DNA from: Leidyana gryllorum EB-2025a
Lineage: Eukaryota > Protista > Apicomplexa
Assembly (NCBI GenBank): GCA_048772705.1
Contig: JBLWGC010000033.1
Span: 124,001 to 188,000, forward strand
Reading direction: 5' to 3'
Length of the DNA: 64,000 nucleotides
Below, piece by piece: positions 6,971 through 50,837 of this stretch; within the stretch, counting starts at the first letter, position 1; every line of letters begins with the position of its first letter. The notes under the pieces were generated by a model, which was given only the letters and a program-made list of their open reading frames with translations, made no database searches and was not told the origin of the DNA. Made by a program: the position numbers and the translations under genes.

Positions 6971-7368
6971 GGAGCCCTGCGAATTGATAGATGGGGGGAA
7001 CGGCTCAATCTCGCTGGATAGTTAGGGGGGGAGACGGGTTACGAGGAGCTCTTTGCATTAATGGTTAGGGCGAGAGGGCTCTCTGACCAGATGGGAGGGC
7101 GAAAGCTGTCCTTCAATCCTTACCGGAGTTAGGGGGTCACTTACCATCGCGAGTCTGTCACCACTCAGCAGTCTTGACTTCGAGAAGCTCCTCCAATAAG
7201 TCGCATGGGAAGCCAAGACGCTGTCATCCTCGTGGTTTGAGTTGGTTGCAGAGTATTTCTGCTGAGACAGTGCGGTGGACTGAAGAACAGATCCCTTGAA
7301 GCACAGTCGCTAAAAAATTTGAGGTGTTTTTGCATTGAAGTGTGGGCAGCGTTTTGTCTAACAAAGAT
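6971..7368 (-). repeat. Right arm of ~400-bp inverted repeat
   Basis: GGAGCCCTGCGAATTG...GGCAGCGTTTTGTCTAACAAAGAT; reverse complement of 2207-2605. Confidence 0.95.
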
Positions 7369-21700: not shown

Positions 21701-22246
21701 CGACAGCTTTTCCGCCTCGATCCCCTCGTTGGTCAAGAGCAGTTTGGCGCCGGTCTGTTTCATGAGGTTCTCCACACTCGCCCGTGTCTGTCCTGGATTG
21801 ATCATCAGAAGCTTGCGATCCGACCTGTCCGACGAAAGTCAGCCGTCACCTGTGAGCATCAAGACGCACCTCAGTATCCCCAACAAGAGGAGGAAAATCG
21901 TCATGTCATCGTCGAGCATAACACCAATGGTGTCATTTATCCCCGCGCGGTCGCCCAAGAGATCCTCGATCAATCCGCCCATGCGACAAGCCATCGTCCA
22001 CAACTCAGCCGTCTCAACGTCTACATAGTCCGACTTGTCTTCAGAAGGTATCAAGACATTCACATTGCGAGGATTTGTATCCGCATGGTGTTTCAGAATG
22101 TGCATAATTGTCGGGTACTCAAACACGTTTACCGGGAGCCTGGGCGCAATCTCCTCGAGCGTACAGTGATGCTCGAGGCTCGTAATCATCGGTCTCACTT
22201 CTTGCGTCGACATGAGAAGTATCCCACGTGCATGCTCCTCCACCAT
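18705..22246 (-). CDS. NRPS-like carboxylic-acid-reductase-type enzyme 1 (A-T-T-R), 3 exons
   Basis: Adenylation motifs HSSGSTGLPK, YGSTE, ATSDLF, GRTGDT, PISQKGN; two carrier motifs (FTDLGLSS, LLDAGMTSL); reductase motifs VTGTSGSLG, HNAWLVDFN, GYGLSKFVAE. Start could be 22246 or 22213. Confidence 0.9.
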
Positions 22247-30800: not shown

Positions 30801-31372
30801 GTTTCGGTTTCAAACGCCATCTGATGGGCGCTGTTGCGGTTCGACGAGATGGATGCCTACTTGGGCGTCAAAGGGTAGGCCTCCTTTGCTGGCGGCGGGC
30901 GCATATAGCACCAGTTCGAACAGCGCTACGGCATGCGCGAGCGCTTTACAGGCCGCTCTGACGTCACTGGTTGATCTATTCTGTGGTAGAAAATGCACAG
31001 ACGGCGTTAATGCCGTGGCGACGAGTTTGATCGCATTGATCCATTTGTACAGAGGTTGTTGATGGAGATTGGTGGGGACAGCTTTGATAAAGAAATCTTC
31101 GGGAGGGGTGTCGAGGTCATTGGCTATGTATAGAGCAGTGGTTGGGTAAAAACAGAGGACTCACGACGGTCACAGTCGAGTGCGTGACGCAGATACGGTA
31201 TCCAAAGAGTGATATTGTCTTGTAGATACTGCCACAGTTGTGTGATGAGGAGTGTGTTCTGTTTGTCTTGGGAAACGAATGTAAGCGTCACAGAGGTGCT
31301 GAAGCACAGGGAGTGTTTGATAGTGGGATATAGACGGTTGGGGGCTTCGAGGAGATCAACAGGTTTTGTCAT
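27856..31372 (-). CDS. Large multi-exon hypothetical protein with BRCT-like C-terminus
   Basis: Chain of minus-strand ORFs (31124-31372, 30810-30998, 29272-29988, 27856-29259); C-terminal IVSYAWLEECYLQG...Y resembles the BRCT WxxxC motif. May be more than one gene. Confidence 0.45.
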
Positions 31373-31378
31373 AATCGA

Positions 31379-31846
31379 TCAAATAACCCGTTGAATCTCG
31401 GGCGAGCAACAACAACAACAACACCGCAAGCAGCAGTGAGCGCAACCCAGCACAGGAGCGGGAATGAAAAGTCTAATTAAGCTACGAGCAGCTGCGATGA
31501 TGTATGGATTGTTGCGTTGTTCTTCTCGACTCTGCGAGCCTCGTGGCCAATCGAGCCAAGACCAGCGTGTGGCCCTCTCAGGCTCTGGCGTGCCGGTTTG
31601 GTGAGCTTCGGGTCCAGCTTGAGGAGGCGATGCTGACCCACCGTTAACTTTGGTTTTCACAGTCTCCCAAGCCTTCTCAAGACTTGATCGGGCCGAGTCG
31701 AGCAAACTCTCTTTCCTCTCTGAAGGTGGCGGTGGTGGACTTGAGTGATCAACAACATTGGGCGGCGATCCGTCAAGGCGCTGATGAACGCCTTGAGGAA
31801 AGTCCTCTTGATGTCTCTCATCATCAAATCCTTCCATGGTATGCAT
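31379..31846 (-). CDS. Small protein with cysteine-rich C-terminal tail
   Basis: 155-aa ATG ORF ending CAHCCLRCCCCCCSPEIQRVI after a hydrophobic stretch. Confidence 0.65.
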   Translation of the reverse strand: MHTMEGFDDERHQEDFPQGVHQRLDGSPPNVVDHSSPPPPPSERKESLLDSARSSLEKAWETVKTKVNGGSASPPQAGPEAHQTGTPEPERATRWSWLDWPRGSQSREEQRNNPYIIAAARSLIRLFIPAPVLGCAHCCLRCCCCCCSPEIQRVI

Positions 31847-31887
31847 GTGCGGGGCGCGAGTATTCGTGTCCTACTGTTACCGCATAC

Positions 31888-33212
31888 ATGACTTCTGCAC
31901 CCCAAACGAATATGAGTGGCTCTGTACCGGCCCATCGGCCCCTACCGCGCTGGTGTCTCGGCTTCTCTGTCATTGTATCGATGGTTTCGGGCTTGGGATG
32001 CATTTTCGTCCAGAAATTGATGAACCGGACAAAGAGTTACCGATGCAGTGACACTACCAACATTGTGTGCTCGCCAGAGTACTTTAATTCTCCTCTACTC
32101 CAATTGCTGTTGGGTGCCTTTGGCGGTAAGTTGAGCGCGTCCTCTCCTTTCCTTTGATTTTTCTATCACTGTCAGCATTGGGATGCTGGGGACTATATGC
32201 CTTTGACGCTTGGAGAGCTCTCCGTCGTGGTCTCATCTATGGGAATCTCGAGCTGATCACCCGGTCAGAGTCTCTGGCCAAACCATCACCCCACCCACTG
32301 ATTTGGATCATCCCCGCAGTCTACGAATTTGGCGCAAGTTACCTTTGCAATCTGGCAATGTCGATTACCTTTGCGTCGACTGTACTCATGTTGCGTACCT
32401 TCAATACGGCGGTGGTGGCGATACTGACTACAGTCTGGCTGCGGTCGCCTTTGAGACGACATCACTGGGCAGGCGTGATCGTTATCACTATTGGAACAAT
32501 GATTGCGGCGGCCTTTTCGGCTTTGATCCAGGACCCCAATACACCATACACCAAGCAACAGAGTTATATCGGAGGCGCTGCCGCTTTGCTGAGCTGTTTC
32601 TTTACCAGTTTGAAGGTCTGCACAGAGGAGAAATGGCTAAAGGAGTATCGCATCGCACCCTTCAAAGCTGCTGGTATTCAGGGCGGATTCCATATTCTCT
32701 TTGCGTTAGGGTTTATGGCTGGGAGTGCTGGTGAACCAGACTTTAGAGCCGGATGCTATCAGTTGCTACACGACAAGCGGCTCTCCATCTTGGCTATCCT
32801 ATTTGTCTTGTGTATCTTCGCCTTCAATGCCAGTCTCATCGCTATCTCCAAACTCGCCAGCAGTTTGCTCAGAACGGTCCTCCACGCCTTCCGCACAGTC
32901 ATTGTCTATCTTCTGGAGCTCTGTATTGGCTGGACTACCTTCCACTCGCTAGACTGCGTTAGCATCATCACAAGCACTTTGGGTTTGCTCCTCTATACAA
33001 ATTTCATCCCGATCCCAGGGGGATCCAAAGTCGTCAGCGGAGATCCAATGGCAGCGCAGTCAGAGTATTCAGCGCTTCCAATAATCGAAGGCAACACGTT
33101 GTATCCCGCGGACGTTCACGCGGATGTGGTGGAGCCGTTGACTGAAGACCAGCACTTACACCAGTCTCCGACAACACCGACTATCATGGAGTTGGCAGCA
33201 TACAGTCGCTAA
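31888..33212 (+). CDS. DMT-superfamily transporter (SLC35F6 / nucleotide-sugar-transporter-like), 2 exons
   Basis: About 10 hydrophobic helices; motifs ITFASTVLMLR, EEKWLK, ASSLLRTVLHAFRTVIV; one intron near 32126-32176. Confidence 0.8.
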
Positions 33213-34504
33213 CAGAGGGGTTTGAAATTGGCTTTCCGATGCTTCGTGAGGCAACTCATTGAGCAGTATGTAAAATCGTACTTGCGAAGGGGTTCGTTGT
33301 CGTTGGTGGGAAACATGGTACCACACACATCGCATTTGAAGTGAGCGACGAAAGCTGCCTTTTTCAGCTTTGGAGCCCAGCTGAAGGTCAACCACTCGAT
33401 CAGTGCCCGCGCTTCGGCCTTGGGCGATCCGTGGTGCAAGATTTCAAGTCGACGGAGTCGTGGCCCGAATCCTTCACCACCACCAATCTCTTGGTCCACG
33501 CGACCGAACAAACCACTCGCGACGATATGAGTACAATTGCAGAGCTTTTGGCGAGTCTGCATCCACTCGGAGATTCTGATAAGAGTACTTTTGGTCGGCC
33601 ACACTCCCACGGAGTGCGGATGACTCTCTATTGTCAGTCCAACATGAGAGCGTTTCTTGTTCAACGCACACGTCAAATCCATCAGTGTGTCCTTGGCGTC
33701 GGTTTCCTCAATCTCCCAGGGAATGGGGTTGAGAAATAGCAGTTTGGGACTCAATCGTGCAGCATCATCACTTTGCACCTCGGATGAGAGATGACCGTTC
33801 ACGAGTTCGATCATCCGAGTAGCGATAGTTGCGCTCGATCGAGGCTTTCCATATACACTGTAAATGATGATCGGCATCGGCACCGGCTTGAAGAAAAGAC
33901 TGACTCTGGCGGCAACTCGCAAAGCGTTGGTGTCGAGACAATCGATCGGTCCCAGCGCCCCAACGGGGACGAAATTGTCTCCACATCGGATACCGACCTG
34001 AGTTTCGGCCAAGAGGCGTGCCGTCTCCTTGGTGGCGTCCTCATCAGTCCATGAGGCATCTCGTTTGACTTTCGGAGCCGCAGCAAAAACCAGCCGGAAG
34101 CCATTCCGTAGACATTGCGACCTCAGTCTCTCCATCACCAGCGGATCAGAAGATGGGAGGGCCGTCAAGAGTAACATTTGACGGCCAGCGCAGTACTCTG
34201 ACAAACTGTTCATCGCGGCATGTAGACACTCAGCGTCTAAATTCAGATTCTCGGCGCACGCCATTGGTGCCCGTATCACAGCCCCCCGCGTCGCCAGTGA
34301 TAGTCCTATATTTCGATTCGGCACGCCATCGCTTCCGCCAACGCTGTGCAGATCACCGGCCAGATACTCCGGCCCTATCGCCACCTCTATGTTGCTCAGT
34401 GACTCTGGGTCTTGAGCTCCATTAACTGTCACCACACACTCATGGGGCAAGTTGGCAGGTCGACCTTCAAACTCTTCCTGTGGGGGTTGCGAAATGGTAA
34501 TCAT
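33209..34504 (-). CDS. Degenerate phosphotriesterase-related protein with C-terminal zinc-finger (treble-clef-like)
   Basis: VVTVNG, ENLNLD, VPVGALGPI, LRVAARV follow the PTE/PTER motif order; C-terminal CDVCG...FTYCSMSCLTKH. Confidence 0.55.
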   Translation of the reverse strand: MITISQPPQEEFEGRPANLPHECVVTVNGAQDPESLSNIEVAIGPEYLAGDLHSVGGSDGVPNRNIGLSLATRGAVIRAPMACAENLNLDAECLHAAMNSLSEYCAGRQMLLLTALPSSDPLVMERLRSQCLRNGFRLVFAAAPKVKRDASWTDEDATKETARLLAETQVGIRCGDNFVPVGALGPIDCLDTNALRVAARVSLFFKPVPMPIIIYSVYGKPRSSATIATRMIELVNGHLSSEVQSDDAARLSPKLLFLNPIPWEIEETDAKDTLMDLTCALNKKRSHVGLTIESHPHSVGVWPTKSTLIRISEWMQTRQKLCNCTHIVASGLFGRVDQEIGGGEGFGPRLRRLEILHHGSPKAEARALIEWLTFSWAPKLKKAAFVAHFKCDVCGTMFPTNDNEPLRKYDFTYCSMSCLTKHRKANFKPLC

Positions 34505-34621: not shown

Positions 34622-35563
34622 TCAGTCAGTAGTACATTGTGGGCTACACTGTGGTGGTCTGTCTATGGCTCCAGAAGCCTCCTCGAATGTGTCGATCCAT
34701 TTTTGAGTAACGTCGGCCAGGTATCTCTTCGCTGCGACAAAACGTTTGCTGTCCATCAGTTGCCCCATCAATATGTCGTGGAACTTGGCATCTTCCAAAT
34801 CCTCAGTTGAGTAAGTCAGTCGATCGTCCACCTTTGCATCCCAGATCGGGATGGAGCGTCGGAAAGTCGTCGACAATTCTCGAACAGATCGTGTGAGTTT
34901 CACTGTCGACTGAGTGTGAGTGACCGGGGAGCAATCTTTCTTTTCCCTCTCCCCAGCATCGTCACTCCGTGTCTCCTTTGGTACGAGTTCGAAACACCAT
35001 CGAGAGTGCCAGGGCTGGGTGTGCACCCAATCGGGTCGCATAGGATCAAATTGGACCGGCCATGACGTTGTACCCTCCAAGCACTTCACGTGTACATAAA
35101 GTTTCCCTGTCCTGCTACCGATCCCTGTCGCAATCGACGGATGCGGCTGTCGAACGTCAAACCACCGTCCAACTCTTTCCTCGATGCAGTGTTCACGGTA
35201 CTCTTGCACTACCCGATTCCCCTCAGGTCCGTCGATCGCTAACCTTCGGCAGCGGTGACGCGCTTCGAAGTCTTCGCAGTCGCAATCCACCATAATCGAT
35301 CTTCCCGGCACCCCATTCACGTCATTAACGATCTCGCGTTTCGACTCCCAATTATATTGGATCGCCTGGCCGCCAGGTGCACCCGGCTTATCCCAGGTCG
35401 CGGTCGATGGACTCGGCACGCCCAAACAGTGAACTTTGTTATACCGGACATCGATATTGTGCTGACCAAATACTATGCCCCTCAGCAGTAGGCGCGATTC
35501 CCCCTTCTCTTTCGAGTTGAGAAGTATTTTCCCACTGGAGAGAACGGCGCTGTTCACTATCAA
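34622..35563 (-). CDS. Hypothetical protein, ~310 aa
   Basis: 313-codon ORF with non-ATG track start; no family recognised. Confidence 0.55.
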   Translation of the reverse strand: MIVNSAVLSSGKILLNSKEKGESRLLLRGIVFGQHNIDVRYNKVHCLGVPSPSTATWDKPGAPGGQAIQYNWESKREIVNDVNGVPGRSIMVDCDCEDFEARHRCRRLAIDGPEGNRVVQEYREHCIEERVGRWFDVRQPHPSIATGIGSRTGKLYVHVKCLEGTTSWPVQFDPMRPDWVHTQPWHSRWCFELVPKETRSDDAGEREKKDCSPVTHTQSTVKLTRSVRELSTTFRRSIPIWDAKVDDRLTYSTEDLEDAKFHDILMGQLMDSKRFVAAKRYLADVTQKWIDTFEEASGAIDRPPQCSPQCTTD

Positions 35564-36161: not shown

Positions 36162-36736
36162 TTGACGGTTGGTTGGTGCATCGGGTTGTTGTTTAAATTC
36201 GTGGTTGCTCAGTAATTGTCAATCCAAAAACATGTGTGTGAAAACGTGTCTCGGCTTTGGCGGGCTCCGGGATCCATTATTGCGCCTTGTCGCTCTAGCG
36301 GGTGGTGGTGTCGGCTACCCGTCACATCCTTACACAACTAATCGGAAATTTTGGGGACCCCTCTGCAGCTGTGGGCTTCTCCAAGATTTTCCCCATTTAC
36401 AGCTGTATACTTTGCGGATGGGAGTGTGCGTCGACTTCCGAAGACATTTGGAGTGTAACACTGCCGCAATTCCGCAGTGTTAGAAAGCACTAATTGCTAT
36501 GGCGAGGACACGAACGCAAAATCCTATGGGAAAGATTCAGGGAAGGGCCCTGGGCTCTTCCCCAAGCGGCAGCAGCCGCACCCACCACGTCGGGTGTGGA
36601 CCGGGTGGGGTGAACACAGCTGGTCCCGGTGAGCGCGCTTTGCGATGCGGAATGCGAATGACGGTGGCATTGAGCACATAAGTTCACCGCTGATACCACT
36701 GATCGTTGCAATGGCGAATTTGAAGCTCCATTCTAA

Positions 36737-38739
36737 GACTCATATTGAGGAATAAGGTTTGCGGGTAAGTTCAAAGATTTCAAGCATTGTAAAATGGCAT
36801 AAGGTTACTCCAGCTGCTGCTCCTCCCTTGCGCTGGAAAATGTCGTTTCCGACTATTGTAGTGCTGAGGCTATAGCACGCTCCCGCATAAAAGGTGCGAA
36901 GTCTTTGCAGTGGAGGCACGTTGAGGATTGTTGTGACTCCAGTCTTCTCTGTGTCGAGGCGACGCTACAGTACATCTCAGGCCCGCATCCGTAATTGATC
37001 TCATTGAAAACTGATTTGTTCTTTGGAGTCGTAATGGGATGTTGGAGTGATGAGTTTCCGAGGCGGAGGGCCTACGACACATTCGGTCAGGCTGCCGACG
37101 CAGCGATGACGGACCCATTCATCAACAAGATGGAGGAATGAGCCCGCCTGTTGGCATTTAGGTCCCTGTGGGGGTACAGTGGCCAGCACTGGGACTCTGC
37201 GATTGGAACACAAGTCAACGGACGTGCGAGTGTTGCAAAGGGGGAGACTATTCGCTCAGGGAGACTTGAACCTCCGATGCAAAGGGATACTCTGCAGAGG
37301 TCTCCCCGGCCGGCAGCGAAGGCCGCGGACGGCTTCCGATTGCTCCCACAGCACCTTCGCTACCACGTGTGCATCCAACAAATCTGTCTGTGCTATGAAA
37401 GACAGTCGTCACCGATCCAAGAGGAAAACGGTATGACCAAAAAGCCCATAAACCCCGGTGATCTGGTCGGACCTGTAAGTGTTAACGGGAGGGTTCAGCT
37501 ACACATATCCAAACTCCTGGGAGTGCCTGATACCCACCCCACTCTTTCCTCCTCCGTCCCCTCCAGGATGAATATTGGCCCCATTGATGGATCATTGACG
37601 CTCTAAAATCACGAGAGAACGATCTAAAGCTGCCTTTGGCGAATCAAAAGAGAGGGGAATGGCGATACGGAGGATGTATTCCGATCGTTGATAGAGCTGC
37701 TGGTCCCCGGCTGGATTGCTCGACAGGTGTTTTCGGCTGCAATGGTACTCTTACCAATGTCCTCAAGGCCACCTCGCAGAGGAATTGGACGAAACTAACG
37801 CTACAGCAGCCTTTGGCCGAAGGCAAATCACTGTGGGAGAAACTGTCCAGCCCTGCTAATGTCATCGGGCAGTCTCACACAGTGAAACACCGTCGACCCC
37901 GTCCTCATGCCCGACGCGGTTGGCACAACGTGGTAGATGAGGCTCGGAACCGTTTGTCCCACACCCCATTTGCAGACTCAACAGAGTGTCTGTCTCAGGA
38001 CTGCTCTCAGAGTCGTCTGTTGCTCAACTGAACACAACACTCCACGGAGCGTTTATTGCGCAAATCACCAACGGAGAAGCTTCAGCTGCTCTCGGTGGGT
38101 GGTTTCGTATGCGCACTGTGGACACCGACATCCACCTCTGTATCTCTCGACTCGAAGAGACACAACGGCCGCGGATTGACTAAAATAAAGGCTGTCATTA
38201 CAAAAACTAAATCGGAAATTTTGGGGACCGCTCAGTGCTGCCGAGTGCCTTCCCCGAATTTCCCGCCACATCGAAGTTTCTGGATTACTCCACGTTGTGG
38301 GATGAAGAGCCGTGAGGAAGCAACCACGAAAAGAGAAGATTCTAAGTGATTGAAGTTCGCGGAAGGGAATCACGCAATGCTAAACAGCAAAAAGGAGAAT
38401 CTCTAGCTGAGATGGGCATCAGACCCATCGGGTTTTGTTGTACGCTGACGCAACCAAGCGTGCGTCAGCCGAGTGTGCCAAGAAGAACCCATCTTCTTGG
38501 GGCCATCGACCGATGATGGGTGGGGCGAGCAGGTGAAGCCCTCTCGCGTAGATGAAAGCGCCTCCCAGTGCGTTTGGGAGGGAGTCGGAGCCTCCAAACA
38601 GTGGACCCACCACCAGTTCGGAACCGGTGGTTGGTACCACAGCAGAGGCGATGTCGCTTTCTTTTTTGGTATGATCAGAACTGTTGTCATCTCGATTGGT
38701 GACAAAGAACCGACTTCAATTTCTCCTTCATATGAGGAA
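36737..38739 (+). repeat. Left arm of ~2-kb palindrome
   Basis: Near-identical reverse complement of 39153-41141; matching ORF translations on opposite strands (e.g. 37151-37606 vs 40133-40588). Confidence 0.95.
36790..38739 (+). pseudogene. Frameshifted paralogue of the FHA-like gene
   Basis: VLQRGRLFAQGDLNLRCK, GRVQLHISKLLG, GCIPIVD and KHRRPRPHARR occur in different frames and match the 42534-44213 protein in order. Confidence 0.85.
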
Positions 38740-39152
38740 AACCTCCTACGAGGAAAACATACATACACGTGGGGTGGGAAGCAAACCACCTGGTCAATTA
38801 GTGTTGACAGAGTTAACTGATGCCTTTGCACCTCATGCCCCAAAAGACTTCAGAGTAACTACTTAATGAACTGTGCACCTAAGAAGGCAGTCTTAGGTCT
38901 CATCGGGTTGTTGACTAAGGGGATTATTACAGTGATAGTGCCGGTCGTAAGCAGCGTGTAGCATTAGGATTAGCTATGTTCACCGGGTCTACTTAGCTCT
39001 AGTCTCTGACCTAAAAGGAGTTACTTCCTAACGCATGTTCCTCATATACATCTAATCTTTAACACCTTTTTATACGTTAGACTATCTCACTCAACAATAC
39101 GTTAGACTATGTCTCTCAACAACCAAATGATCTACTAAACAAGTAAACAGTG

Positions 39153-41090
39153 TTCCTCATATGAAGGAGAAATTGAAGTCGGTTCTTTGTCACCAATCGA
39201 GATGACGTACATTCGAATGCATCAAAAAAAGAAAGCGACATCGCCTCTGCTGTGGTACCAACCACCGGTTCCGAACTGATGGTGGGTCCACTGTTTGGAG
39301 GCTCCGACTCCCTCCCAACCCCACTGGGAGGCGCTTTCATCTACGCGAGAGGGCTTCACCTGCTCGCCCCACCCATCATCGGTCGATGGCCCCAAGAAGA
39401 TGGGTTCTTCTTGGCACACTCGGCTGACGCACGCTTGGTTGCGTCAGCGTACAACAAAACCCGATGGGTCTGATGCCCATCTCAGCTAGAGATTCTCCTT
39501 TTTGCTGTTTAGCATTGCGTGATTCCCTTCCGCGAACTTCAATCACTCAGAATCTTCTCTTTTCGTGGTTGCTTCCTCACGGCTCTTCATCCCACAACGT
39601 GGAGTAATCCAGAAACTTCGATGTGGTGGGAAATTCGGGGAAGGCACTCGGTAGCAGCTGAAGCTTCTCCGTTGGTGATTTGCGCAATAAACGCTCCGTG
39701 GACGTGTTGAGTTGAGTAACAGACGACTCTGAGAGCAGTCCTGAGACAGACACTCTGTTGAGTCTGCAAATGGGGTGTGGGACAAACGGTTCCGAGCCTC
39801 ATGTACCACGTTGTGCCAACCGCGTCGGGCATGAGGACGGGGTCGACGGTGTTTCACTGTGTGAGACTGCCCGATGACATTAGCAGGGCTGGACAGTTTC
39901 TCCCACAGTGATTTGCCTTCGGCCAAAGGCTGCTGTAGCGTTAGTTTCGTCCAATTCCTCTGCGAGGTGGCCTTGAGGACATTGGTAAGAGTACCATTGC
40001 AGCCGAAAACACCTGTCGAGCAATCCAGCCGGGGACCAGCAGCTCTATCAACGATCGGAATACATCCTCCGTATCGCCATTCCCCTCTCTTTTGATTCGC
40101 CAAAGGCAGCTTTAGATCGTTCTCTCGTGATTTTAGAGCGTCAATGATCCATCAATGGGGCCAATATTCATCCTGGAGGGGACGGAGGAGGAAAGAGTGG
40201 GGTGGGTATCAGGCAGCCCCAGGAGTTTGGATATGTGTAGCTGAACCCTCCCGTTAACACTTACAGGTCCGACCAGATCACCGGGGTTTATGGGCTTTTT
40301 GGTCATACCGTTTTCCTCTTGGATCGGTGACGACTGTCTTTCATAGCACAGACAGATTTGTTCGATGCACACGTGGTAGCGAAGGTGCTGTGGGAGCAAT
40401 CGGAAGCCGTCCGCGGCCTTCGCTGCCGGCCGGGGAGACCTCTGCAGAGTATCCCTTTGCATCGGAGGTTCAAGTCTCCCTGAGCGAATAGTCTCCCCCT
40501 TTGCAACACTCGCACGTCCGTTGACTTGTGTTCCAATCGCAGAGTCCCAGTGCTGGCCACTGTACCCCCACAGGGACCTAAATGCCAACAGGCGGGCTCA
40601 TTCCTCCATCTTGTTGATGAATGGGTCCGTCATCGCTGCGTCGGCAGCCTGACCGAATGTGTCGTAGGCCCTCCGACTCGGAAACTCATCACTCCAACAT
40701 CCCATTACGACTCCAAAGAACAAATCAGTTTTCAATGAGATCAATTACGGATGCGGGCCTGAGATGTACTGTAGCGTCGCCTCGACACAGAGAAGACTGG
40801 AGTCACAACAATCCTCAACGTGCCTCCACTGCAAAGACTTCGCACCTTTTATGCGGGAGCGTGCCATACCCTCAGCACCACAATAGTCGGAAACGACATT
40901 TTCCAGCGCAAGGGAGGGGCAGCAGCTGGAGTGACCTTATGCCATTTTACTATCAACCCAAGAGGAGTACGTTCGCATAGGTCGGTCAGTCACATATTAG
41001 ACGTGAAAATATTGCGGGGCACTGACGAGACCGTGAATGCGATCGAAAGAATACCGCTCTTGCCTTCGCGCCGGCACACACACACTTTCA
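39153..41090 (-). pseudogene. Second (inverted) copy of the frameshifted FHA-like paralogue
   Basis: Same fragments in ORFs 40303-40560, 40133-40588 and 39543-40103. Confidence 0.85.
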
Positions 41091-41141
41091 CAATGCTTGA
41101 AATCTTTGAACTTACCCGCAAACCTTATTCCTCAATATGAG
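39153..41141 (-). repeat. Right arm of ~2-kb palindrome
   Basis: Reverse complement of 36737-38739; 413-bp spacer at 38740-39152. Confidence 0.95.
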
Positions 41142-41386
41142 CCTCAGATTTACAATCGCAATGATCAGTGGTATCAGCAGTGGAGTTAAGTACGCAATGC
41201 CACCTGTCGTTCGCATTCCGCATCGCAAAGCGCGTTCTCCGGGACCAGCGGTCTTCACTCCACCCGGTCCACACCCGACCTGGTGGGTGTGGCTGCTGCC
41301 CTTTAGGAAAGAGCCCAAGGCCATTCCCTGGATCTTCCCGACAGGAGACCGCTCTTTGCCCAATGCGGTGAAGAGATAGGAACCCA

Positions 41387-42178
41387 TGTGTCAACTTCCA
41401 TCAAGTTGTCGTCAAGTTCGACTACCGGGCCAACCCACATAAGAGCCATTCTACAACCCAACGAGGGATTACTTTCGGAGTTAGTTACACCACAGACGTA
41501 ATGATCACGAGCGAAAAACAATTTCAATGTTTGCATCAGATCTCTTCATATTCGACTCTTTGAATGGCGATCAATTGGAGTCGCCATGGAGCGAACGCGC
41601 TTGCGCGATACTTGACGTCTTGGGGTGTTTCCGCAAACGGTTTTCCTCAACATGAGCCTCAGAATGGAGCAGAATAGAGCTTCAGATTCAAATCGCTACG
41701 ATTAGTGGTATTAACCCCCAAGTTAAATACGCAATGCCACCTGTCGTTCGCATTCCGCATCGCAAAGCGCGTTCTCCGGGACTAGCGGTCTTCACTCCAC
41801 CCGGTCCAGACCCGACCTGGTGGGTGTGGCTGCTGCCCTTTAGGGAAGAGCCCAAGGCCATTCCCTGGATCTTCCCGACAGGAGACCGCTCTTTGCCCAA
41901 TGCGGTGAAGAGATAGGAACCCTCTTGTTCCTACAAGAGGCCCATTGCCTCTTTTTCCTGCATCGCGTGGTGACCCACTTTTTGTGTTCGTGTCCTCGCC
42001 AATAACAATTAGTGATTCCTAGCACTGTGGCAATTCCACAGTGTTACACTCCAAATGTCATCGTAAGTCGACGCACACTCCCGTCCACAGAGTAAACAGC
42101 TCTGAATGGGGGGAAATCCTGGAGAAGCCCACAGCTGCACTGAGGGGCCCCAAAATTTCCGAATTAGTTTTGTAACGA
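41387..42178. repeat. ~790-bp direct repeat, copy 1
   Basis: TGTGTCAAC...TTTTGTAACGA, highly similar to 44530-45320 apart from a ~75-bp central patch. Confidence 0.92.
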
Positions 42179-42533
42179 GGTGACCAGTAGCTGACACCAC
42201 CAGAAGCCAGAGCGACAACGCAGCACAGGCGGAATAGTGCACCGCGGCGCTCAGCCAAGCCGAGGGATCGACGCTTACTGTTTTACACACACGCTTTTGG
42301 ATCGACACTTTCCGAACAACCACAAACTAAAACAACATTGCGATGCACCAACCGACCGGCAGCGCAGATCAGTTGAACCAGACCACCAGAAGCCAACCGC
42401 CGTCCTCACACATATTTGACCCAGCCAGATAGGACAATAACTTACAAATCAGTAGCAAGTGGCACTCGGGTAAGAACTGACAGTTGCCATCCAGTGTATC
42501 ACTTCGAGTTGAAAGTCTGTGGTGAGAAACGCT

Positions 42534-44213
42534 TCATTGGGAATCAGCTGCAGCCGCCAATTTCTTCCGGGTATGTGGTCGAGGGCGGCGATGTTTCGTC
42601 TGGTATTCCGATACTATATCCCACGTCATCTTGGTCTTGATATAGTGCTCTTCCTCTTTCAAAACTCGTTGTACCGCCGCCCGGTTGCTGGCAGTGTTCA
42701 AGTGGCCTTTGATTATGTCCTTGAAGGTACCGGTATACGCCATGGGCTCAATGGAATGCACAATATCAGGGGTGTGCGGGTCTATAATTGGTACGCACCC
42801 CTCACACCGTGTTGTTCTGGTGAGTGTGGTCTTGTAGAGCATCACCACCAAGACCGTCACAGTCTCTTTGTCCCGCTGTTGGGGTGCCGGAAGTCTCCAG
42901 CGGTGTCGCCAGAAAGTCTCGTAGGGGGGCGAGGCGGACGGGGTGAATGTCATCAGCCAGTTGGTGAGGCCGAGGAGCTCGGAGATGTGGAGGCGAACTC
43001 GGCCTTTGCCACTGGCCGCTCCTATGGGGAGAACGGAGAGAGGTACTCGCGTGTCCTCCCATTTCCCAATCCGCTCCGAAGTGACTTCAAGTTCGTAATC
43101 TAGTGTTCCTTGCTCCCACGGCTCCAGTCGCGCTCCAATAGTGGTGTGGCGTGAGTCCGACGCTGGACAATCACATGGGAGTTCTTCCACAACGGAGGCA
43201 GGCCGGCCGTGCACTAGAACTCGGTTGGTGACTGTTTGATTCCAACACGAGTACCCAGTAACCTCATATGGGGAACGGTCGTGCTTCAATAGAGCCTTCT
43301 GAGGTGCATGCTCGGCGTCAGGAAGACCGAGGCAGTAGAGACTCTTACAGCTAATCTCCAAATCTCCCTCCGCGAACATCACCCCCCTCTGTAGTAGTCG
43401 CAGCTCGGGGCCCCTGCCCTCTACAACCAGTTTGCCGGATGTCGCTATCATCCCCTTGATGTTCACCAGATCATTCTTCACCCGCAGTTTTATCTGCGCG
43501 TTGACCCCCACGGCGAGAATCGATGGTCGACCGGTAGTCGCATGAGTGGCACCAGATGATTTGGTCCAATAATCGACTCCGTTGACGAGGACCTGTGCAA
43601 CGATTGTCAATCGATTGCCAATCACGCTGCCATTATCTTTGTTGTTGAATCGACCGCGTACTTCAATCACCGCCGAATCCGCATACACTCTCGTGTCGTT
43701 TACAAAACTGTTCGTCACGATGCCAAGACTTCCTTGCACTTCGAGCTCCTTTGTCAGACTTAGCCGTGTTACTTCGAGTTTGAGATTGCCTTTAACGACG
43801 ACATGTGATGTAATTTCGAGAGCATCGGTTTTCAAAGTCAGATCGTTTTCGATCACAGTGTCGACGTCGAACAATACGCTCTTCACCTCAATAACAAGCG
43901 GGTACACTTTCGTGTATCCCGCCAGCTCGCTCAGTCTCACGCAAAGATGGCGGGCATCAACTTTCGCGGCTTGCAAACCGAGCAAGTCGTCGGGGTTGGT
44001 CTCAGCGGCCGAGTCCAACTCCTGTTCCCGGATCCTCATCTTCTCCGCGAGCGTCCGGTTCGCTCTTGGGGCTCGGGTGCGAGAACCCAAGAGAGGCTCC
44101 GCCACCACTGTCACATCCTTCGCAGACTGCTCGTCTCCATCCTGGAGTGCGCATTCGCTCGTTTCAAGGTCACACACAGACTCAGCTGGGCTATAAAAAA
44201 GCTCCATGGTCAT
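42534..44213 (-). CDS. Filamentous-haemagglutinin-like beta-helix repeat protein, probably truncated
   Basis: Intronless ORF (first ATG 44213) with ~19-aa periodic repeats: VIENDLTLKTDALEITSHV / VVKGNLKLEVTRLSLTKEL / EVQGSLGIVTNSFVNDTRV / YADSAVIEVRGRFNNKDNGSV / IGNRLTIVAQVLVNG, then DLVNIKGMIATSGKLVV and MFAEGDLEI. Confidence 0.65.
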   Translation of the reverse strand: MTMELFYSPAESVCDLETSECALQDGDEQSAKDVTVVAEPLLGSRTRAPRANRTLAEKMRIREQELDSAAETNPDDLLGLQAAKVDARHLCVRLSELAGYTKVYPLVIEVKSVLFDVDTVIENDLTLKTDALEITSHVVVKGNLKLEVTRLSLTKELEVQGSLGIVTNSFVNDTRVYADSAVIEVRGRFNNKDNGSVIGNRLTIVAQVLVNGVDYWTKSSGATHATTGRPSILAVGVNAQIKLRVKNDLVNIKGMIATSGKLVVEGRGPELRLLQRGVMFAEGDLEISCKSLYCLGLPDAEHAPQKALLKHDRSPYEVTGYSCWNQTVTNRVLVHGRPASVVEELPCDCPASDSRHTTIGARLEPWEQGTLDYELEVTSERIGKWEDTRVPLSVLPIGAASGKGRVRLHISELLGLTNWLMTFTPSASPPYETFWRHRWRLPAPQQRDKETVTVLVVMLYKTTLTRTTRCEGCVPIIDPHTPDIVHSIEPMAYTGTFKDIIKGHLNTASNRAAVQRVLKEEEHYIKTKMTWDIVSEYQTKHRRPRPHTRKKLAAAADSQ

Positions 44214-44433
44214 AAAACCTCCGGTTCCGCTTGTAGGCAGCGTGACTGACGATGAGTACCGCAATTCGCACAGACGTTAAAAAAGTCAGGCGCGCCTCTG
44301 ACTCTTTTGGAACCCAGCACAGCCCTTTCCAAAGTCCACCGCCCATCTGGCAGCATGACGAGCGGCCGCTAGGCTGAGTGTGTTACCCTTTTTAATATAC
44401 TCTAAAGAATAACGAACACTTGCACCCTTAGTT

Positions 44434-44518
44434 CCGGTTTCTCATAGTCCTTTCCTCTAGTAGTCCATCTAACGACCGGTTTCTCATAGTCCTTTCCTCT
44501 AGTAGTCCATCTAACGAC
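44434..44518. repeat. ~42-bp tandem duplication
   Basis: ccggtttctcatagtcctttcctctagtagtccatctaacga twice. Confidence 0.9.
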
Positions 44519-44529
44519 CAGACATCAAG

Positions 44530-45320
44530 TGTGTCAACTTTCATCAAGTTGTCGTCAATTTCGACTACCGGGCCAACCCACATAAGAGCCATTCTACAAC
44601 CCAACGAGGGATTACTTTCGGAGTTAGTTACACCACAGACGTAATGATCACGAGCGAAAAACAATCTCAATGTTTGCATCAGATCTCTTCATATTCGACT
44701 CTTTGAATGGCGATCAATTGGAGTCGCCATGGAGCGAACGCGCTTGCGCGATACTTGACGTCTTGATGTTTTCCGCAAACGGTTTTCCTCAACATGAGCC
44801 TTGAAATGGGGAGGTAATATTTGTCAAAGTTTGATTAAGTGACTGATTCCAGTGTTTATCGCTACAATCAGAATCATGCCACCTGTCATTCGCATTCCGC
44901 ATCGCAAAGCGCGTTCTCCGGGACCAGCGGTCTTCACTCCACCCGGTCCACACCCGACCTGGTGGGTGTGGCTGCTGCCCCTTAGGGAAGAGCCCAAGGC
45001 CCTTCCCTGGATCTTCCCGACAGGAGACCGCTCTTTGCCCAATGCGGTGAAGAGATAGGAACCCTCTTGTTCCTACAAGAGGCCCATTGCCTCTTATTCC
45101 TGCGAAAAGTGGTGACCCACTTTTCGTGTTCGTGTCCTCGCCAATAACAATTAGTGATTCCTAGCACTGTGGCAATTCCACAGTGTTACACTCCAAATGT
45201 CATCGTAAGTCGACGCACACTCCCATCCACAGAGTAAACAGCTGTGAATGGGGGAAAATCCTGGAGAAGCCCACAGCTGCACTGAGGGGCCCCAAAATTT
45301 CCGAATTGGTTTTGTAACGA
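44530..45320. repeat. ~790-bp direct repeat, copy 2
   Basis: Matches 41387-42178. Confidence 0.92.
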
Positions 45321-45329
45321 CGTCGCGGG

Positions 45330-46061: not shown

Positions 46062-48422
46062 TTATGGAGTGATTTGAGCGTGTAGACTTTGGAGTGGACG
46101 GTCGGAGGCCAACGAAATGAAAAAGGTCATGTTGGTTGGATGGACGATAAGATTTAGATTATTATCCCACGAGGCTAATTCACTTATTGGATTGACAGAA
46201 AAGGTAATCCTTTGTGGTTGGTCTGATTGTAGTGTTACCCGTTTATATCCAACGAGCTGGAGGAGTGATGGTGTGATTCTGGCCGTCCGGTTGCCAACAT
46301 AGAGTTGGAGTATTTCAGTGTACTCGATGGCTCTCTCTTTTGACGGGTCGCCCCAGGCATCGTCCGTGATGACGTCAAACTCAATCCTAAAGTCTGTAGG
46401 ATGCGCAAAAGTCATGACCGTTGGTGTCACAGTCGCATTTTCCACTTTGACGGAGTGGTATCCTTCCCCACTTCCGAAGGCATACAGAGGCGTTGGAAGT
46501 CTGTCGATATAGATACTGTGAAACGCTCTGTCTCCATCCCACATTGTGGTGATCTCTTTCCCTTCCGCCGGTCTCGAAACTCCGGGATGATTGTAGTAGA
46601 GGGGTTCCTGACCGACATGACGGGGGAAGCTCATGGGTACTCTACCGCCTGGCTCCGCGTGGCCCATCAGGACGCTTGCAGCCGCCTTTGAGGCACCGTG
46701 ACCGAGAGGCAACCATTGCCAAAGGATGGCGTCCATGTGATAGTGCTCCCATTCTATCGCGAGCGGTCTCTCCCCATATGTGAACAATATCGCTGCAGGA
46801 CGCTCTCGTTGATCCTTCTTTTCAATGGCGGCTGCCACAGCCCGCAGCAGTACCCGATGGTTATGGGGCAGAGTAAGCTGAAGGTTCCGTCGTCCCTTCC
46901 GATATGTCTCACTGTCCCCGACCACAGTAAGAATCTTCGTGAAATTCCCGTGGGTGATCAATTGTGCAGCCTCGGCAGCCAGTGCCACGGTCTTGGAGCT
47001 GTCGACACTGTATCCCGCAGCATAGCTTACGTCCAAACCGGTCTGCCGCAGAGCCTCCGACAGACTGGTCAGGGATTCAGGGCTTCTGCACTGCGTAGGC
47101 GCGTTTGTCGCTACCGCTGTCAAATGGCTTTCGGCTATCTCTCCGAGCAGCAGTACTCTGTCATCTTGTGAGAAGGGCAAAGCTCTCTCGGCATTCTTCA
47201 AGAGCAACAGCGACCGAACGGCCGCTGTCTCGGCCAACTCCAAACTCTCGGGAGAACACATCGACTCCATCGAACGACTCTCGGTGTATTTGGCCCTCAG
47301 CATCTGCTCCTTCGCTATCATCACTCTCTGAGAGCTGACTGTGATGTAGTCCTCCACCGTGTGCGCGCTCTCGGGTGCCGAGTGTTTTCGAAGCGCCTGC
47401 AGCGTGCTGTCATAGATACTGTCTGCCATGTCGACCCCGGCCCGTAGGAGCGCTGCTGTGTACTTCTCAACGTCCTCAAAGTGGCCCGTGTGAATGGCGT
47501 GCGGTCTGTCCTGGTTCAATGCCATGACAATGCCCTTGTAGCCAAACAGCCCGCGCAATGTATCAGTCACATATTCTGGACTCGTCAAAAAGGGTCGACC
47601 GTTCAGTGTATTGTCCTTCGCCAAAATGCACAGAGGCCGCTCGCTTCTCAGCACTCTGGCCAGCGAAGCAAAGTACCCACCAAACAGAACACCTGTCCCA
47701 GAATCGTGTCCCTCGGTCAATGCCCCAGTTACCGAGGTACAAGTCGCCCCGAACTGGTTCAAACATAGTCCAACTCGATCATCAGCTTCCATAATAGCTT
47801 CTGCCATCGTTCCAATGAGATGCTGATCCTCTCCCCCACTCTCAGGAGCGGAAACGAGGCGAGCGTCCAGACTCAATTGCACATTCGGGAAGAAGTGGTA
47901 ATTGAACCCGGCCGCCAAGAGGTCATTGTGCTTCGCTCGGGTGATTGACTGCACTAACGGCCGATCAAACGTTGACACTAACCCTAGGGGAGGGGGGAAA
48001 TGTGTGCCTATTTGAACCTTGGGACCAGGAGCCAACATCAACTTTGGGCTATGTTGCTTCATGCGTGCTGCCATTGCTGCGTATAATGGGGCCATCAGAG
48101 TCTCATTATAGGCCAACCGTTCATCTTCTATTATTACGTTGCTGATCAGCTCCTCTCTGAGGTCCCGTTGGAACCTTTGCGACACACTTGCCCCGCTGTG
48201 TATCCGACGAGTCACGAGTTGACCTATACGTTGTTTCAAAGTCAATGATTCATACTGAGCCCGGACTGCCGTTGGGACATCGCTGCTGTCAAACGGCAGA
48301 TGGGCAACTGGATCATAAGATGGAATGAGGTCGGGAGAGCGAAGTGATTGGCCTTTGACAGTAACAGTCAGGTGCCACGCCAAGAGGGCCGTTGTGAGGC
48401 ACCGTTTGCTGAGTCTGAACAT
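46062..48422 (-). CDS. GH3 (BglX-like) glycosidase homologue, predicted secreted, catalytic motifs lost
   Basis: LTLKQRIGQL, FPPPLGLVSTFDR, ESGGED, SLLLLKN, PGGRVPMSFPRHVGQEPLYYNH, PLYAFGSGEGY and a FnIII-like end; signal-like N-terminus MFRLSKRCLTTALLAWHLTVTVKG; KH and SDW motifs absent. Confidence 0.88.
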   Translation of the reverse strand: MFRLSKRCLTTALLAWHLTVTVKGQSLRSPDLIPSYDPVAHLPFDSSDVPTAVRAQYESLTLKQRIGQLVTRRIHSGASVSQRFQRDLREELISNVIIEDERLAYNETLMAPLYAAMAARMKQHSPKLMLAPGPKVQIGTHFPPPLGLVSTFDRPLVQSITRAKHNDLLAAGFNYHFFPNVQLSLDARLVSAPESGGEDQHLIGTMAEAIMEADDRVGLCLNQFGATCTSVTGALTEGHDSGTGVLFGGYFASLARVLRSERPLCILAKDNTLNGRPFLTSPEYVTDTLRGLFGYKGIVMALNQDRPHAIHTGHFEDVEKYTAALLRAGVDMADSIYDSTLQALRKHSAPESAHTVEDYITVSSQRVMIAKEQMLRAKYTESRSMESMCSPESLELAETAAVRSLLLLKNAERALPFSQDDRVLLLGEIAESHLTAVATNAPTQCRSPESLTSLSEALRQTGLDVSYAAGYSVDSSKTVALAAEAAQLITHGNFTKILTVVGDSETYRKGRRNLQLTLPHNHRVLLRAVAAAIEKKDQRERPAAILFTYGERPLAIEWEHYHMDAILWQWLPLGHGASKAAASVLMGHAEPGGRVPMSFPRHVGQEPLYYNHPGVSRPAEGKEITTMWDGDRAFHSIYIDRLPTPLYAFGSGEGYHSVKVENATVTPTVMTFAHPTDFRIEFDVITDDAWGDPSKERAIEYTEILQLYVGNRTARITPSLLQLVGYKRVTLQSDQPQRITFSVNPISELASWDNNLNLIVHPTNMTFFISLASDRPLQSLHAQITP

Positions 48423-48488
48423 TGCCGCCCCTGTTTGCATATTTGAATCCCAGAGTTCTGGAACGTGTGCAGACACGCGCGTCAGGGA

Positions 48489-50837
48489 ATGTCGTTGATT
48501 CCCTCGTTATTCGGTTTCTCCAGTCATGTTCCCGACTTTGCTTCTTGGGCATCACTACCAATCGATCTACGGCGAACAATATCGAATTTGAATGACGACC
48601 AAATGATAGGGCAAACATCTCAACTTTCAGCCGAGATGTTTGCTTGGAGTCATTTGAATCCGCAGGAGCTTGAGTTGTTAGTGGCGAACGGAAGTATCGG
48701 CAGTATGCTTCATGTGTACAAATATGACGATGTGGATAAGTACCAGCGTATGGCTTTGAATGGGTCCAATACTATCCCGGTCTTGTTCGGATTCGACACT
48801 GTACGAGGTTACGCTACGGCGTTCCCGCAGAACATCGGTCTGGCCGCTGCGTTTGACCGGGATCTGATATACGATGTTTCGCACGCAATGGCCGAGGAGA
48901 CCCTCAAGTCGAACATTCGATGGCTATTTGCTCCGAACTCTGACATTGGTCGAGATGCCCGATGGGGTCGTATGGCTGAGACGAGTGGAGAAGATCCTTA
49001 TTTGACGTCTGAATTGGTCAAAGCGTATGTGACTGGGATTCAATCGACGGGGGCTGCGGCGTGTGTCAAACATTTGGCAGCGTATGGCGGAGCGGAAGCC
49101 GGTCGGGACTACAACCCCACCTATATGAGCGAGCAGCTGTTCTTTACCGACCACACCAAGGCATACAGAGCGGGTTTGGTGGAGGGGGGAGCCTGGACGG
49201 CTATGACGTCTTACAATGCGTTTAATGGAGTCCCGGCGACGATCAATGGTCAGATACTCAATAAACTGGTCCGAGGTGTTTGGGATTGGCACGGTATGGT
49301 GGTGAGTGATTGGGCAGCTGTACACGACTTGATTCATCACGGGGTGGCGATTGACGATGTGGATGCGGTATATCTGAGCGAGTTTGTGGGTGTGGACATG
49401 TCGATGGGCGATGCGGATTACTGGCGATGGCTGAAGGATCAATTGTATCGAACATTGCCCAACGGTGATTTAGTTCGTCAAAATGTCGAGAAATCTGTGC
49501 AACGGATAATCGATCTGAAGACCAAACTCGGTCTGTTTGAGAATCCCTTCATTGATCGACCTGACGTTGAGAAGGATTTCTGTAGCGAGCCCAAGTTAAA
49601 ATTGGCCCTGGATGCTGCCCTCAAGTCCATGGTGCTACTGCAGAATAATGGGGACAACACGCTACCGCTTAAGCGGGAGGCCAACTTGTTGATACTCGGA
49701 GCCCTGGCGGCGAACGTGGAAGACTCTATTGGATCCTGGCCCGACGCCGACGTCTGTCGTGGCAAAGTGAAGACTATCAAAGACGCTTTTGAGGACACTG
49801 ACTATTTGCCTGGCTACACTTCCCCCTGGCGTGAAGACGAACACGGAGACAGCGAGCTGCGGCAGGAAGTTGTCACTAAAATCAAAGGGGCCGAGAAACC
49901 GTATGACGCCATCGTTGTGGTTGTGGGTGAAGCGGAAGCCCAGAATGGAGAGACCACCAGTCGCACCGATCTCAACCTGAACCCACCTCAGGCCAAGTTG
50001 ATCCGAGAAGTATTTTTGGCTATCCATAGCGGAGGAGAGTCGGAGTCGGCAGCGATACCCAAAATAATACTCGTAGTCATCAGTGGCAGACCTCTAACAT
50101 TGAGTTGGGAGGCTGAGAATCTCGATGCCATATTGATGGCCTGGGCAGCTGGTCATGCGATTGGTCCGGCTGTCAAGGCCCTGTTGTTTGGAGACGTGTC
50201 TCCGAGCGGGAGAATGCCCGTGACGACTCCCCGAGACGTCTCGCAATGCCCTCTCCACTATGCCACCGCCATTGAGGATGACGGGTCAGCTCCTGCATGT
50301 TTCGATTACAACGAGGTGTACTGGGGCATCAAGATGCCAGGCGAAGAAGACTGCTATCTTGGCAAAGCGGGAGCGCCCCTGTGGCCCTTCGGACACGGCT
50401 TGAGTTATCAGGCGTTCCGTTACAGCGATCTCCAAGTGTCGCCCAGGATTGTCGATGGCGGGACTCTGTTGGACGATGAGGACAACAGTGTGGACACTGG
50501 CAAGGTGACGGTGGAGGTAACAGTCAGCCGGGGTGGGACGACCGAGGGTCCGACGTTCGACGGCCCAGTGGACCATATCGTTCAAGTGTACGCAGAGGGG
50601 CCCGTGTCCCCGGAGAGTACTTCGTATGCGAGGCGTAAACGGCTCATTGATTTCAAGAGAGTGCACTTTGACCAGGGCGAGGTGGAAAAGACAGTCTCGT
50701 TCGAAATTGACGTGTTAGAATCGTTGGGTAGTTATGACCACCGGTTAGAATGGGTGTTACTGAAGGGAAGCCATAAGATTATCATTGGAAAGGACAGCGA
50801 AGACGAATCACAAGTAGAATCAATAAAGATTCTGTAG
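48489..50837 (+). CDS. GH3 beta-glucosidase (BglX-like)
   Basis: FGFDTVRG, FPQNIGLAAAFD, RDARWGRMAETSGEDP, ACVKHLAAYG, MTSYN, GMVVSDW (nucleophile), NGETTSRTDL, PLWPFGHGLSY; intronless. Confidence 0.95.
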   Translation: MSLIPSLFGFSSHVPDFASWASLPIDLRRTISNLNDDQMIGQTSQLSAEMFAWSHLNPQELELLVANGSIGSMLHVYKYDDVDKYQRMALNGSNTIPVLFGFDTVRGYATAFPQNIGLAAAFDRDLIYDVSHAMAEETLKSNIRWLFAPNSDIGRDARWGRMAETSGEDPYLTSELVKAYVTGIQSTGAAACVKHLAAYGGAEAGRDYNPTYMSEQLFFTDHTKAYRAGLVEGGAWTAMTSYNAFNGVPATINGQILNKLVRGVWDWHGMVVSDWAAVHDLIHHGVAIDDVDAVYLSEFVGVDMSMGDADYWRWLKDQLYRTLPNGDLVRQNVEKSVQRIIDLKTKLGLFENPFIDRPDVEKDFCSEPKLKLALDAALKSMVLLQNNGDNTLPLKREANLLILGALAANVEDSIGSWPDADVCRGKVKTIKDAFEDTDYLPGYTSPWREDEHGDSELRQEVVTKIKGAEKPYDAIVVVVGEAEAQNGETTSRTDLNLNPPQAKLIREVFLAIHSGGESESAAIPKIILVVISGRPLTLSWEAENLDAILMAWAAGHAIGPAVKALLFGDVSPSGRMPVTTPRDVSQCPLHYATAIEDDGSAPACFDYNEVYWGIKMPGEEDCYLGKAGAPLWPFGHGLSYQAFRYSDLQVSPRIVDGGTLLDDEDNSVDTGKVTVEVTVSRGGTTEGPTFDGPVDHIVQVYAEGPVSPESTSYARRKRLIDFKRVHFDQGEVEKTVSFEIDVLESLGSYDHRLEWVLLKGSHKIIIGKDSEDESQVESIKIL

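Follow-up and report, generated by a model that had tools for sequence, protein, structure and literature searches.

A predicted TpsA-type beta-helix shaft in a resident gene family of the apicomplexan Leidyana gryllorum

A 64,000-nucleotide stretch of the Leidyana gryllorum EB-2025a genome (GenBank assembly GCA_048772705.1, contig JBLWGC010000033.1, positions 124,001 to 188,000; hereafter called the window, whose own numbering we use throughout) carries a minus-strand open reading frame (ORF) whose product is predicted to contain a short beta-helix. The predicted helix is of the kind that forms the shaft of bacterial TpsA proteins such as Bordetella filamentous haemagglutinin (FHA). We conclude, with a probability of roughly 0.7, that this window ORF belongs to a gene family that is resident in the genome and has a shaft homologous to TpsA/FHA repeats. 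The shaft is most simply bacterial in origin, and would have been shortened, would have lost its export parts, and would have become joined to a lineage-specific C-terminal region.

FHA and TpsA shafts are seen as a defining trait of bacterial type Vb secretion. If our reading is true, then a eukaryote can take up an FHA module, fold and keep it without the outer-membrane partner, and join it to new C-terminal domains. The family would also provide a short, natural 10-rung FHA-type helix for structural work, as well as a marker of gene flow from bacteria to parasites in a poorly sampled lineage. Our full-text literature searches returned no paper that connects gregarines or apicomplexans with FHA repeats.

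A 19-residue repeat with a confidently predicted fold

The window ORF is uninterrupted over 576 codons (Table 1), a length that far exceeds chance expectation at 52% GC. Its probable start is the first ATG, at position 44213, which yields a protein of 559 amino acids. An earlier reading of the window, made from the sequence alone (the original prediction), had proposed that an intronless ORF carries consecutive FHA-like units of about 19 residues at positions 43340-43860. Indeed, both peptides quoted there occur in the translation, and the span corresponds to residues ~136-308 within a single open frame. When ORF residues 139-310 are arranged in rows of 19, they exhibit a small residue or glycine followed by an L-x-L pattern, and the strand starts in two structural models bear out the same units. 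From the window ORF sequence alone, however, the 19-residue signal is weak, given that its lag-19 hydrophobic autocorrelation is just 0.14.

The first AlphaFold2 model (model 1) was built from an alignment that includes bacterial segments, and its predicted local distance difference test (pLDDT) values exceed 90 at model residues ~85-295, all of which are beta (model numbering equals ORF numbering minus 17). Because bacterial rows could bias this model, model 2 was built from own-genome rows alone. The same strand pattern emerges, with block-mean pLDDT values of 88-96 for residues 91-210 and 76-86 for residues 231-290. Strands begin in both models at residues 106, 125 and 144, and then at 201, 240 and 278, which corresponds to a 19-residue pitch and about 10 rungs. 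The C-terminal region is modelled with pLDDT values below 35 in model 1 and mostly below 50 across both models.

Comparison of each model with 48,161 PDB chains by VIA-align yields an identical top six, and all of these structures are TpsA proteins (HxuA twice, HMW1, EtpA twice, and FHA). Specifically, model 1 matches them with Z scores of 19.6-16.1 and root-mean-square deviation (rmsd) values of 2.3-3.3 Å over 189-231 residues, whereas model 2 gives Z scores of 18.4-14.7; over all of these superpositions the rmsd ranges from 2.3 to 3.8 Å. Other beta-helices, including autotransporters, tailspikes and lyases, reach Z scores of at most 15.5 with model 1 and 13.8 with model 2, and left-handed helices superpose at an rmsd of 12-13 Å. 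An Atlas shape search is suggestive at most, in that it ranks a TPS-domain FHA cluster first (TM 0.44), and an Atlas feature search with the whole protein gives weak leads to FHA clusters (0.79). We confidently predict from the models that the central ~210 residues fold into a right-handed beta-helix of the TpsA shaft type, in which the pitch is 19 residues. The original prediction had named this fold, and the best PDB matches are TpsA proteins even when no bacterial rows contribute to the model.

Paralogues connect the shaft to bacterial TpsA proteins

Six-frame searches of the 15.5-Mb assembly place the window ORF in an own-genome family composed of about six large members and many broken pieces. 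Paralogues on contigs C202 (E 3e-13), C133 (E 4e-7) and C7 (E 4e-5) match the window ORF, and the C7 paralogue passes the cut-off for the Pfam family Fil_haemagg (PF05594) with 26.1 bits against 21.5; nothing else in the genome passes it.

A profile of six family members was compared by HMMER with 1.84 billion representative proteins at a threshold of E ≤ 1e-3, and 130 matches were recovered, the best with an E-value of 6e-49. Almost all of them are 1,000-6,900 amino acids long and match repeatedly on the rung positions. The TPS domain is present in 89 of them, the top matches carry both TPS and Fil_haemagg domains, and the best match adjoins a POTRA/ShlB TpsB gene on its bacterial contig. Column-shuffled and reversed profiles, which serve as controls, recover none of the 130. 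One bacterial TpsA match was also found to cross-match Pfam Hyphal_reg_CWP weakly.

A profile made from the window ORF and the C133 paralogue, without C7, likewise reaches FHA-type proteins, with an E-value of 6.5e-5 for the whole library. In the opposite direction, a bacteria-only FHA profile searched against all six frames of the genome selects the paralogues on C7, C133 and C202 and nothing else. Moreover, hhalign aligns the family with bacterial FHA segments at 97% probability over 138 columns (12% identity; model residues 150-300), with an E-value of 1.3e-10 that is somewhat flattered because the bacterial segments were picked as best matches. Bacterial proteins with TPS and Fil_haemagg domains are thus the sole significant relatives of the family profile, and best matches to TpsA proteins, which the original prediction had named as support, are what the searches return. 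Similarity of the rung region to TpsA repeats is supported at the level of the family, rather than by the window protein alone.

Beyond the rungs, the family has its own character. The C-terminal half yields no match in Pfam, NCBIfam, PADLOC, PHROGs or the PDB and no usable match in the Atlas, and no protein of the 1.84-billion library matches this half of the family profile. A single library protein, P0129, appeared to match beyond the rungs, and it was rejected as an artefact of identical tandem repeats. When the whole family profile is searched against PDB sequences, no match is found.

These data could alternatively be explained by convergence on a beta-solenoid, in which 19-residue rungs resemble FHA solely through the geometry imposed on each rung, and in which the family is eukaryotic or unrelated in origin. 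Several observations favor such an explanation or weigh against our own. A Fil_haemagg match, which the original prediction had proposed to look for, is found with the C7 paralogue, by a margin of 5 bits, but not with the window ORF, which lacks any Pfam, NCBIfam or PDB-sequence match even at E 10 and has no match in PADLOC or PHROGs. A word-index search of 5.8 billion proteins finds no match for it within 0.55-1.75 times the query length. The window ORF scores at most 13 bits against the bacterial relatives, when its shuffled versions reach 8.5. The window protein matches no FHA protein or model significantly, so that it is linked to FHA transitively, through the paralogues. The hhalign identity noted above is low, the repeats that make up the rungs are short and follow a simple pattern, and neither the N-terminus nor the C-terminal half has a bacterial counterpart. 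Finally, of the two structural approaches suggested in the original prediction, AlphaFold returns the beta-helix, whereas a whole-model Foldseek search against the PDB lists assorted beta-helices with nothing below E 0.5.

Nevertheless, geometry imposed by the rungs does not readily explain why the profile matches are restricted to TpsA-type proteins and are not spread over other beta-helix classes. Nor does it explain why a reversed profile, which retains the same period and composition, matches none of these proteins, or why a bacteria-only profile singles out exactly this family from 15.5 Mb of DNA. In addition, each of the two independent models scores higher with TpsA structures than with any other beta-helix. 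On this evidence we judge convergence to be unlikely, and we favor a shaft that shares ancestry with TpsA repeats.

A resident and rapidly rearranging family

The genome carries at least four AP2 domains above the Pfam cut-off and 16 matches to alveolins (IMCp), and it lacks any fungal Zn-cluster domain, a combination that identifies the organism as an alveolate of apicomplexan type. A fungal host, an idea prompted by the GH3 and LYS2-like reductase genes, was rejected on these grounds. Published gregarine genomes span 9-14 Mb with a GC content of ~54%, and this assembly is similar in both respects (PMC9250747). Across the locus that includes the window ORF, GC content is flat at 0.50-0.53. 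The value at third codon positions (GC3) is 0.60 for the window ORF and falls within the range of its neighbours. Likewise, its codon usage correlates with that of the neighbours at 0.62 when read in frame, again within the neighbours' range, compared to 0.27-0.43 when read out of frame or on the opposite strand.

Bacterial contamination, or a chimeric assembly in which bacterial DNA was joined to a eukaryotic contig, would be consistent with the fact that the sole relatives outside this genome are bacterial. However, flat GC content together with host-like GC3 and codon usage makes contamination very unlikely, to the point of being negligible. The gene has eukaryotic genes on both sides, its contig is at least 190 kb long and includes U3 small nucleolar RNA (snoRNA) genes and an AP2 gene, paralogues and fragments of the family are spread over more than 10 contigs, there is no accompanying TPS domain, TpsB gene or operon context, and no bacterial protein is similar over the full length. 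The original prediction of a eukaryotic resident gene is upheld by these features and by the alveolins.

Among the distant and mostly open paralogues are one of 448 amino acids on C7, one of 433 amino acids and a 504-amino-acid frame arranged tail to tail on C133, one on C202 whose frame contains one TAG, and one on C208 that occupies two frames. Apart from the window ORF, four paralogues with ~20-25% identity retain open frames of 433-504 amino acids. The members have in common a helical stretch at the N-terminus, the rungs, and a C-terminal region marked by motifs specific to the family. Specifically, the C-terminal region is conserved solely within this own-genome family, where alignments reveal the motifs CDC and G-x-W-x-D. 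Motifs RLLQRG and C-L-G, which lie just upstream, fall within the last rungs of the predicted beta-helix.

One in-frame TAG interrupts the paralogue at C202:286110-287231, and homology is good on either side of it; this could be a pseudogene of recent origin, an error in the sequence, or a case of read-through. No neighbour gene is common to the surroundings of the paralogues. Around the tail-to-tail pair on C133 there are three ORFs with integrin-beta-like VWA domains (C133:23594-24766, 31241-32527 and 32644-33933).

Broken pieces of the family reside on C26, C62, C71, C74, C98, C139, C211 and C215 and in both arms of a palindrome in the window. The pieces on C62, C71 and C215 are 66-71% identical to the window ORF and span just ~200 bp of it. 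These ~200-bp pieces, like those on C139 and C26, lie within a dispersed repeat that measures at least 2.3 kb and whose copies on different contigs share 91-97% identity; C74 has a related copy of this carrying repeat. When the window ORF is compared with broken copies, the ratio of nonsynonymous to synonymous substitution rates (dN/dS) is 0.43-0.6 over the rungs and at the C-terminal end, whereas residues 350-450 give ~1.2. In sum, the window gene belongs to a small, fast-rearranging and lineage-specific family.

Such a family might be suspected of decay. If so, the window ORF would be an unexpressed or non-functional remnant that is open because it is young, and the family would be junk carried by a repeat, a scenario that is compatible with a bacterial origin. 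Most copies are indeed broken or truncated, pieces lie in the dispersed repeat, the locus is a nest of duplications that includes the palindrome, and dN/dS is near 1.2 over part of the protein. The many broken members and the dN/dS values indicate that constraint is modest, which is a further count against our conclusion. In contrast, a 576-codon frame is open here and the four paralogues at ~20-25% identity are open as well; for paralogues so diverged to remain open, long-term constraint at the protein level is required. Codon usage is host-like in frame but not out of frame, and dN/dS is 0.43-0.6 elsewhere in the protein even though the comparison partners are pseudogenes. We therefore consider decay decidedly unlikely and retain the reading of a resident family that carries a TpsA-like shaft.

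Possible origin and role of the shaft

The original prediction had gone on to propose a horizontally acquired, TpsA-like stalk. The TpsA-like character stands, by way of the paralogues. As for acquisition, we infer a bacterial origin of the shaft by horizontal transfer from the all-bacterial distribution of its relatives. The shaft would descend from a TpsA- or CdiA-like bacterial gene that was taken up by the protist lineage, cut to ~10 rungs, brought into line with host codon usage, and amplified.

The encoded protein may use its short, rigid beta-helix, with the N-terminal helix as a cap, as a scaffold or spacer, a role suggested by how such shafts work in bacteria. This shaft might present the faster-changing C-terminal region of ~265 residues, which would carry the activity, whether binding or enzymatic. 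That scaffold and active domain divide the work in this way is a conjecture that involves an unmodelled C-terminal region, and this too speaks against the full reading. Given that the protein carries no export signal, it would act inside the cell, or else exit along a path that has nothing to do with type Vb secretion.

Export components and comparison with known systems

The original prediction reported no visible signal peptide, TPS domain or TpsB partner, and Pfam and genome profile searches, a TPS hidden Markov model (HMM) and hydropathy all agree. The TPS secretion domain (PF05860) has no Pfam match in the window ORF or its paralogues and none in the genome, though control genomes are silent too, and a TPS HMM built from five of the matches scores the family ORFs below zero. 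Similarly, the TpsB family PF03865 (ShlB) is unmatched in the genome, where the assembly is incomplete and the controls are again silent, and none is found near any paralogue. With silent controls and an incomplete assembly, the absence of both components is likely rather than proven. None of five family members examined has a hydrophobic N-terminal segment or a membrane span, as judged by a hydropathy scan rather than a trained predictor, and an unseen 5′ exon is possible.

The likeness to TpsA proteins (Bordetella FHA/FhaB, Haemophilus HMW1 and HxuA, and E. coli EtpA) includes the right-handed beta-helix, rungs of ~19 residues, and the pattern of N-x-G with alternating hydrophobic positions. 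These proteins are the best structural matches of the protist protein (Z 14.7-19.6) and its sole significant relatives at the profile level. Unlike them, the protist gene resides in a eukaryotic nuclear genome, has no TPS domain, signal peptide or TpsB partner, and encodes ~10 rungs in 559-576 amino acids, whereas TpsA proteins extend over thousands of residues. In the protist protein, moreover, the N-terminus is helical and the C-terminal half is an orphan. Because the window protein departs from a functional TpsA in size and in having no TPS domain, signal peptide or TpsB partner, we describe it as a TpsA-type shaft in a new context and not as a TpsA protein.

There are precedents for multigene families of bacterial-style repeats or beta-helices in eukaryotic microbes, such as the Trichomonas BspA-like and chlamydial Pmp-like proteins of parasitic protists, and the fungal Hyr/Iff beta-helix adhesins. 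Those families have signal peptides, membrane anchors or both, and are not of the FHA type. None of the corresponding Pfam families is matched by the window ORF or by its paralogues.

A second point of comparison is the polymorphic toxin CdiA, in which an FHA-type shaft likewise leads into a variable C-terminal region. Orphan C-terminal modules occur at CdiA loci, and the C-terminal-only copies in the window may be comparable, in that they lie downstream of a full-length gene and start where the conserved part of the shaft comes to its end. In the protist, however, these downstream copies are 24-45% identical, are partly frame-shifted, and lie in a palindrome. Furthermore, Pfam, NCBIfam and PADLOC searches reveal no VENN/pretoxin motif or recognisable toxin domain, and no conserved small ORF or immunity gene follows the window gene. 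A survey of polymorphic toxins (Zhang et al., 2012; PMC3482391) found FHA repeats confined to toxins delivered by the type V secretion system (T5SS), and the transfers to eukaryotes that it lists involve toxin domains rather than FHA shafts. T5SS delivery is probably absent in the protist.

Repeats, palindrome and truncated copies at the locus

The window ORF is flanked by two direct copies of a repeat, R (Table 1). We rejected the possibility that R copies are the long terminal repeats of a dispersed element, as R is found on this contig alone, except for a 78-bp piece. That piece, at 44400-44477 just upstream of the ORF, has 91-97% matches on C123 (twice), C173 and C43, and may be a small dispersed insert.

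In the direction of the gene, the window ORF is followed by the two arms of a palindrome of ~4.2 kb (inner arms 38232-38742 and 39150-39661), each preceded by R, and then by an open C-terminal-only ORF in which a stop codon is located directly upstream of the start of homology. All three of these truncated copies begin to match the window ORF at residue ~269-271, in the last rungs, and two of them are frame-shifted.

Table 1. Features of the window ORF and its surroundings, in window coordinates
Feature	Position	Strand	Basis or remarks
Whole open frame	42534..44264	-	576 codons + stop at 42534-42536; table 11
N-terminal part: acidic low-confidence stretch, then predicted helices (model residues 55-79) before the beta-helix	43968..44213	-	Predicted models, hydropathy
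Predicted TpsA/FHA-type right-handed beta-helix, ORF residues ~100-311, ~10 rungs, one looped-out insert	43332..43967	-	Two models, structural search, hhalign, 19-residue rows
Orphan C-terminal region, 265 residues (ORF residues 312-576), tail helical and basic	42537..43331	-	Alignments, database nulls, low pLDDT
Repeat R, ~790 bp, upstream of ORF in gene direction	44530..45323	.	Confined to this contig
Second R copy, 92% identical, downstream of ORF, upstream of right palindrome arm	41387..42181	.	
Partial R copy	41086..41385		
Inverted R copy	36163..36794		
Right palindrome arm: 5′-deleted, frame-shifted copy of family C-terminal half	39653..40953	-	Homology from ORF residue ~271
Left palindrome arm: same truncated copy	36786..38090	+	98.6% identical to right arm
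Open 313-aa paralogue of the C-terminal half only, from last rungs	34622..35563	-	24% identical to ORF residues 269-537

The full-length gene is followed by truncated C-terminal copies that contain the same junction region, and on this basis a reading modelled on bacterial contact-dependent inhibition (CDI) can be entertained. In such a scheme, the locus would be a eukaryotic CDI-type cassette system in which the C-terminal-only cassettes (the 34622-35563 ORF and the two palindrome arms) recombine at the last rungs and thereby swap the effector or recognition domain. The slim chance that we give to this idea extends to its corollary, which is that a conflict or variation system of bacterial inheritance might have been put to new use in the absence of type V secretion.

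Other genes in the window

Genes of eukaryotic type elsewhere in the window encode WD40, Patched/SSD, Vms1-type VATC domain, GH3 and LYS2-like reductase proteins. Two U3 snoRNA genes with identical scores are present in inverted orientation, at 2265-2415 on the forward strand and at 7160-7310 on the reverse strand, which suggests another inverted duplication. Two LYS2/carboxylate-reductase-like genes, at 19214-21805 (reverse) and 24376-27174 (forward), carry AMP-binding, PP-binding and NAD_binding_4 domains. Since these domains are cut at the ORF ends, introns are likely. Finally, a head-to-head pair of GH3 glycosidase genes occupies 46062-48476 (reverse) and 48465-50837 (forward), with the N-terminal catalytic domain recognised at E 2e-12 in one member versus 2e-51 in the other.

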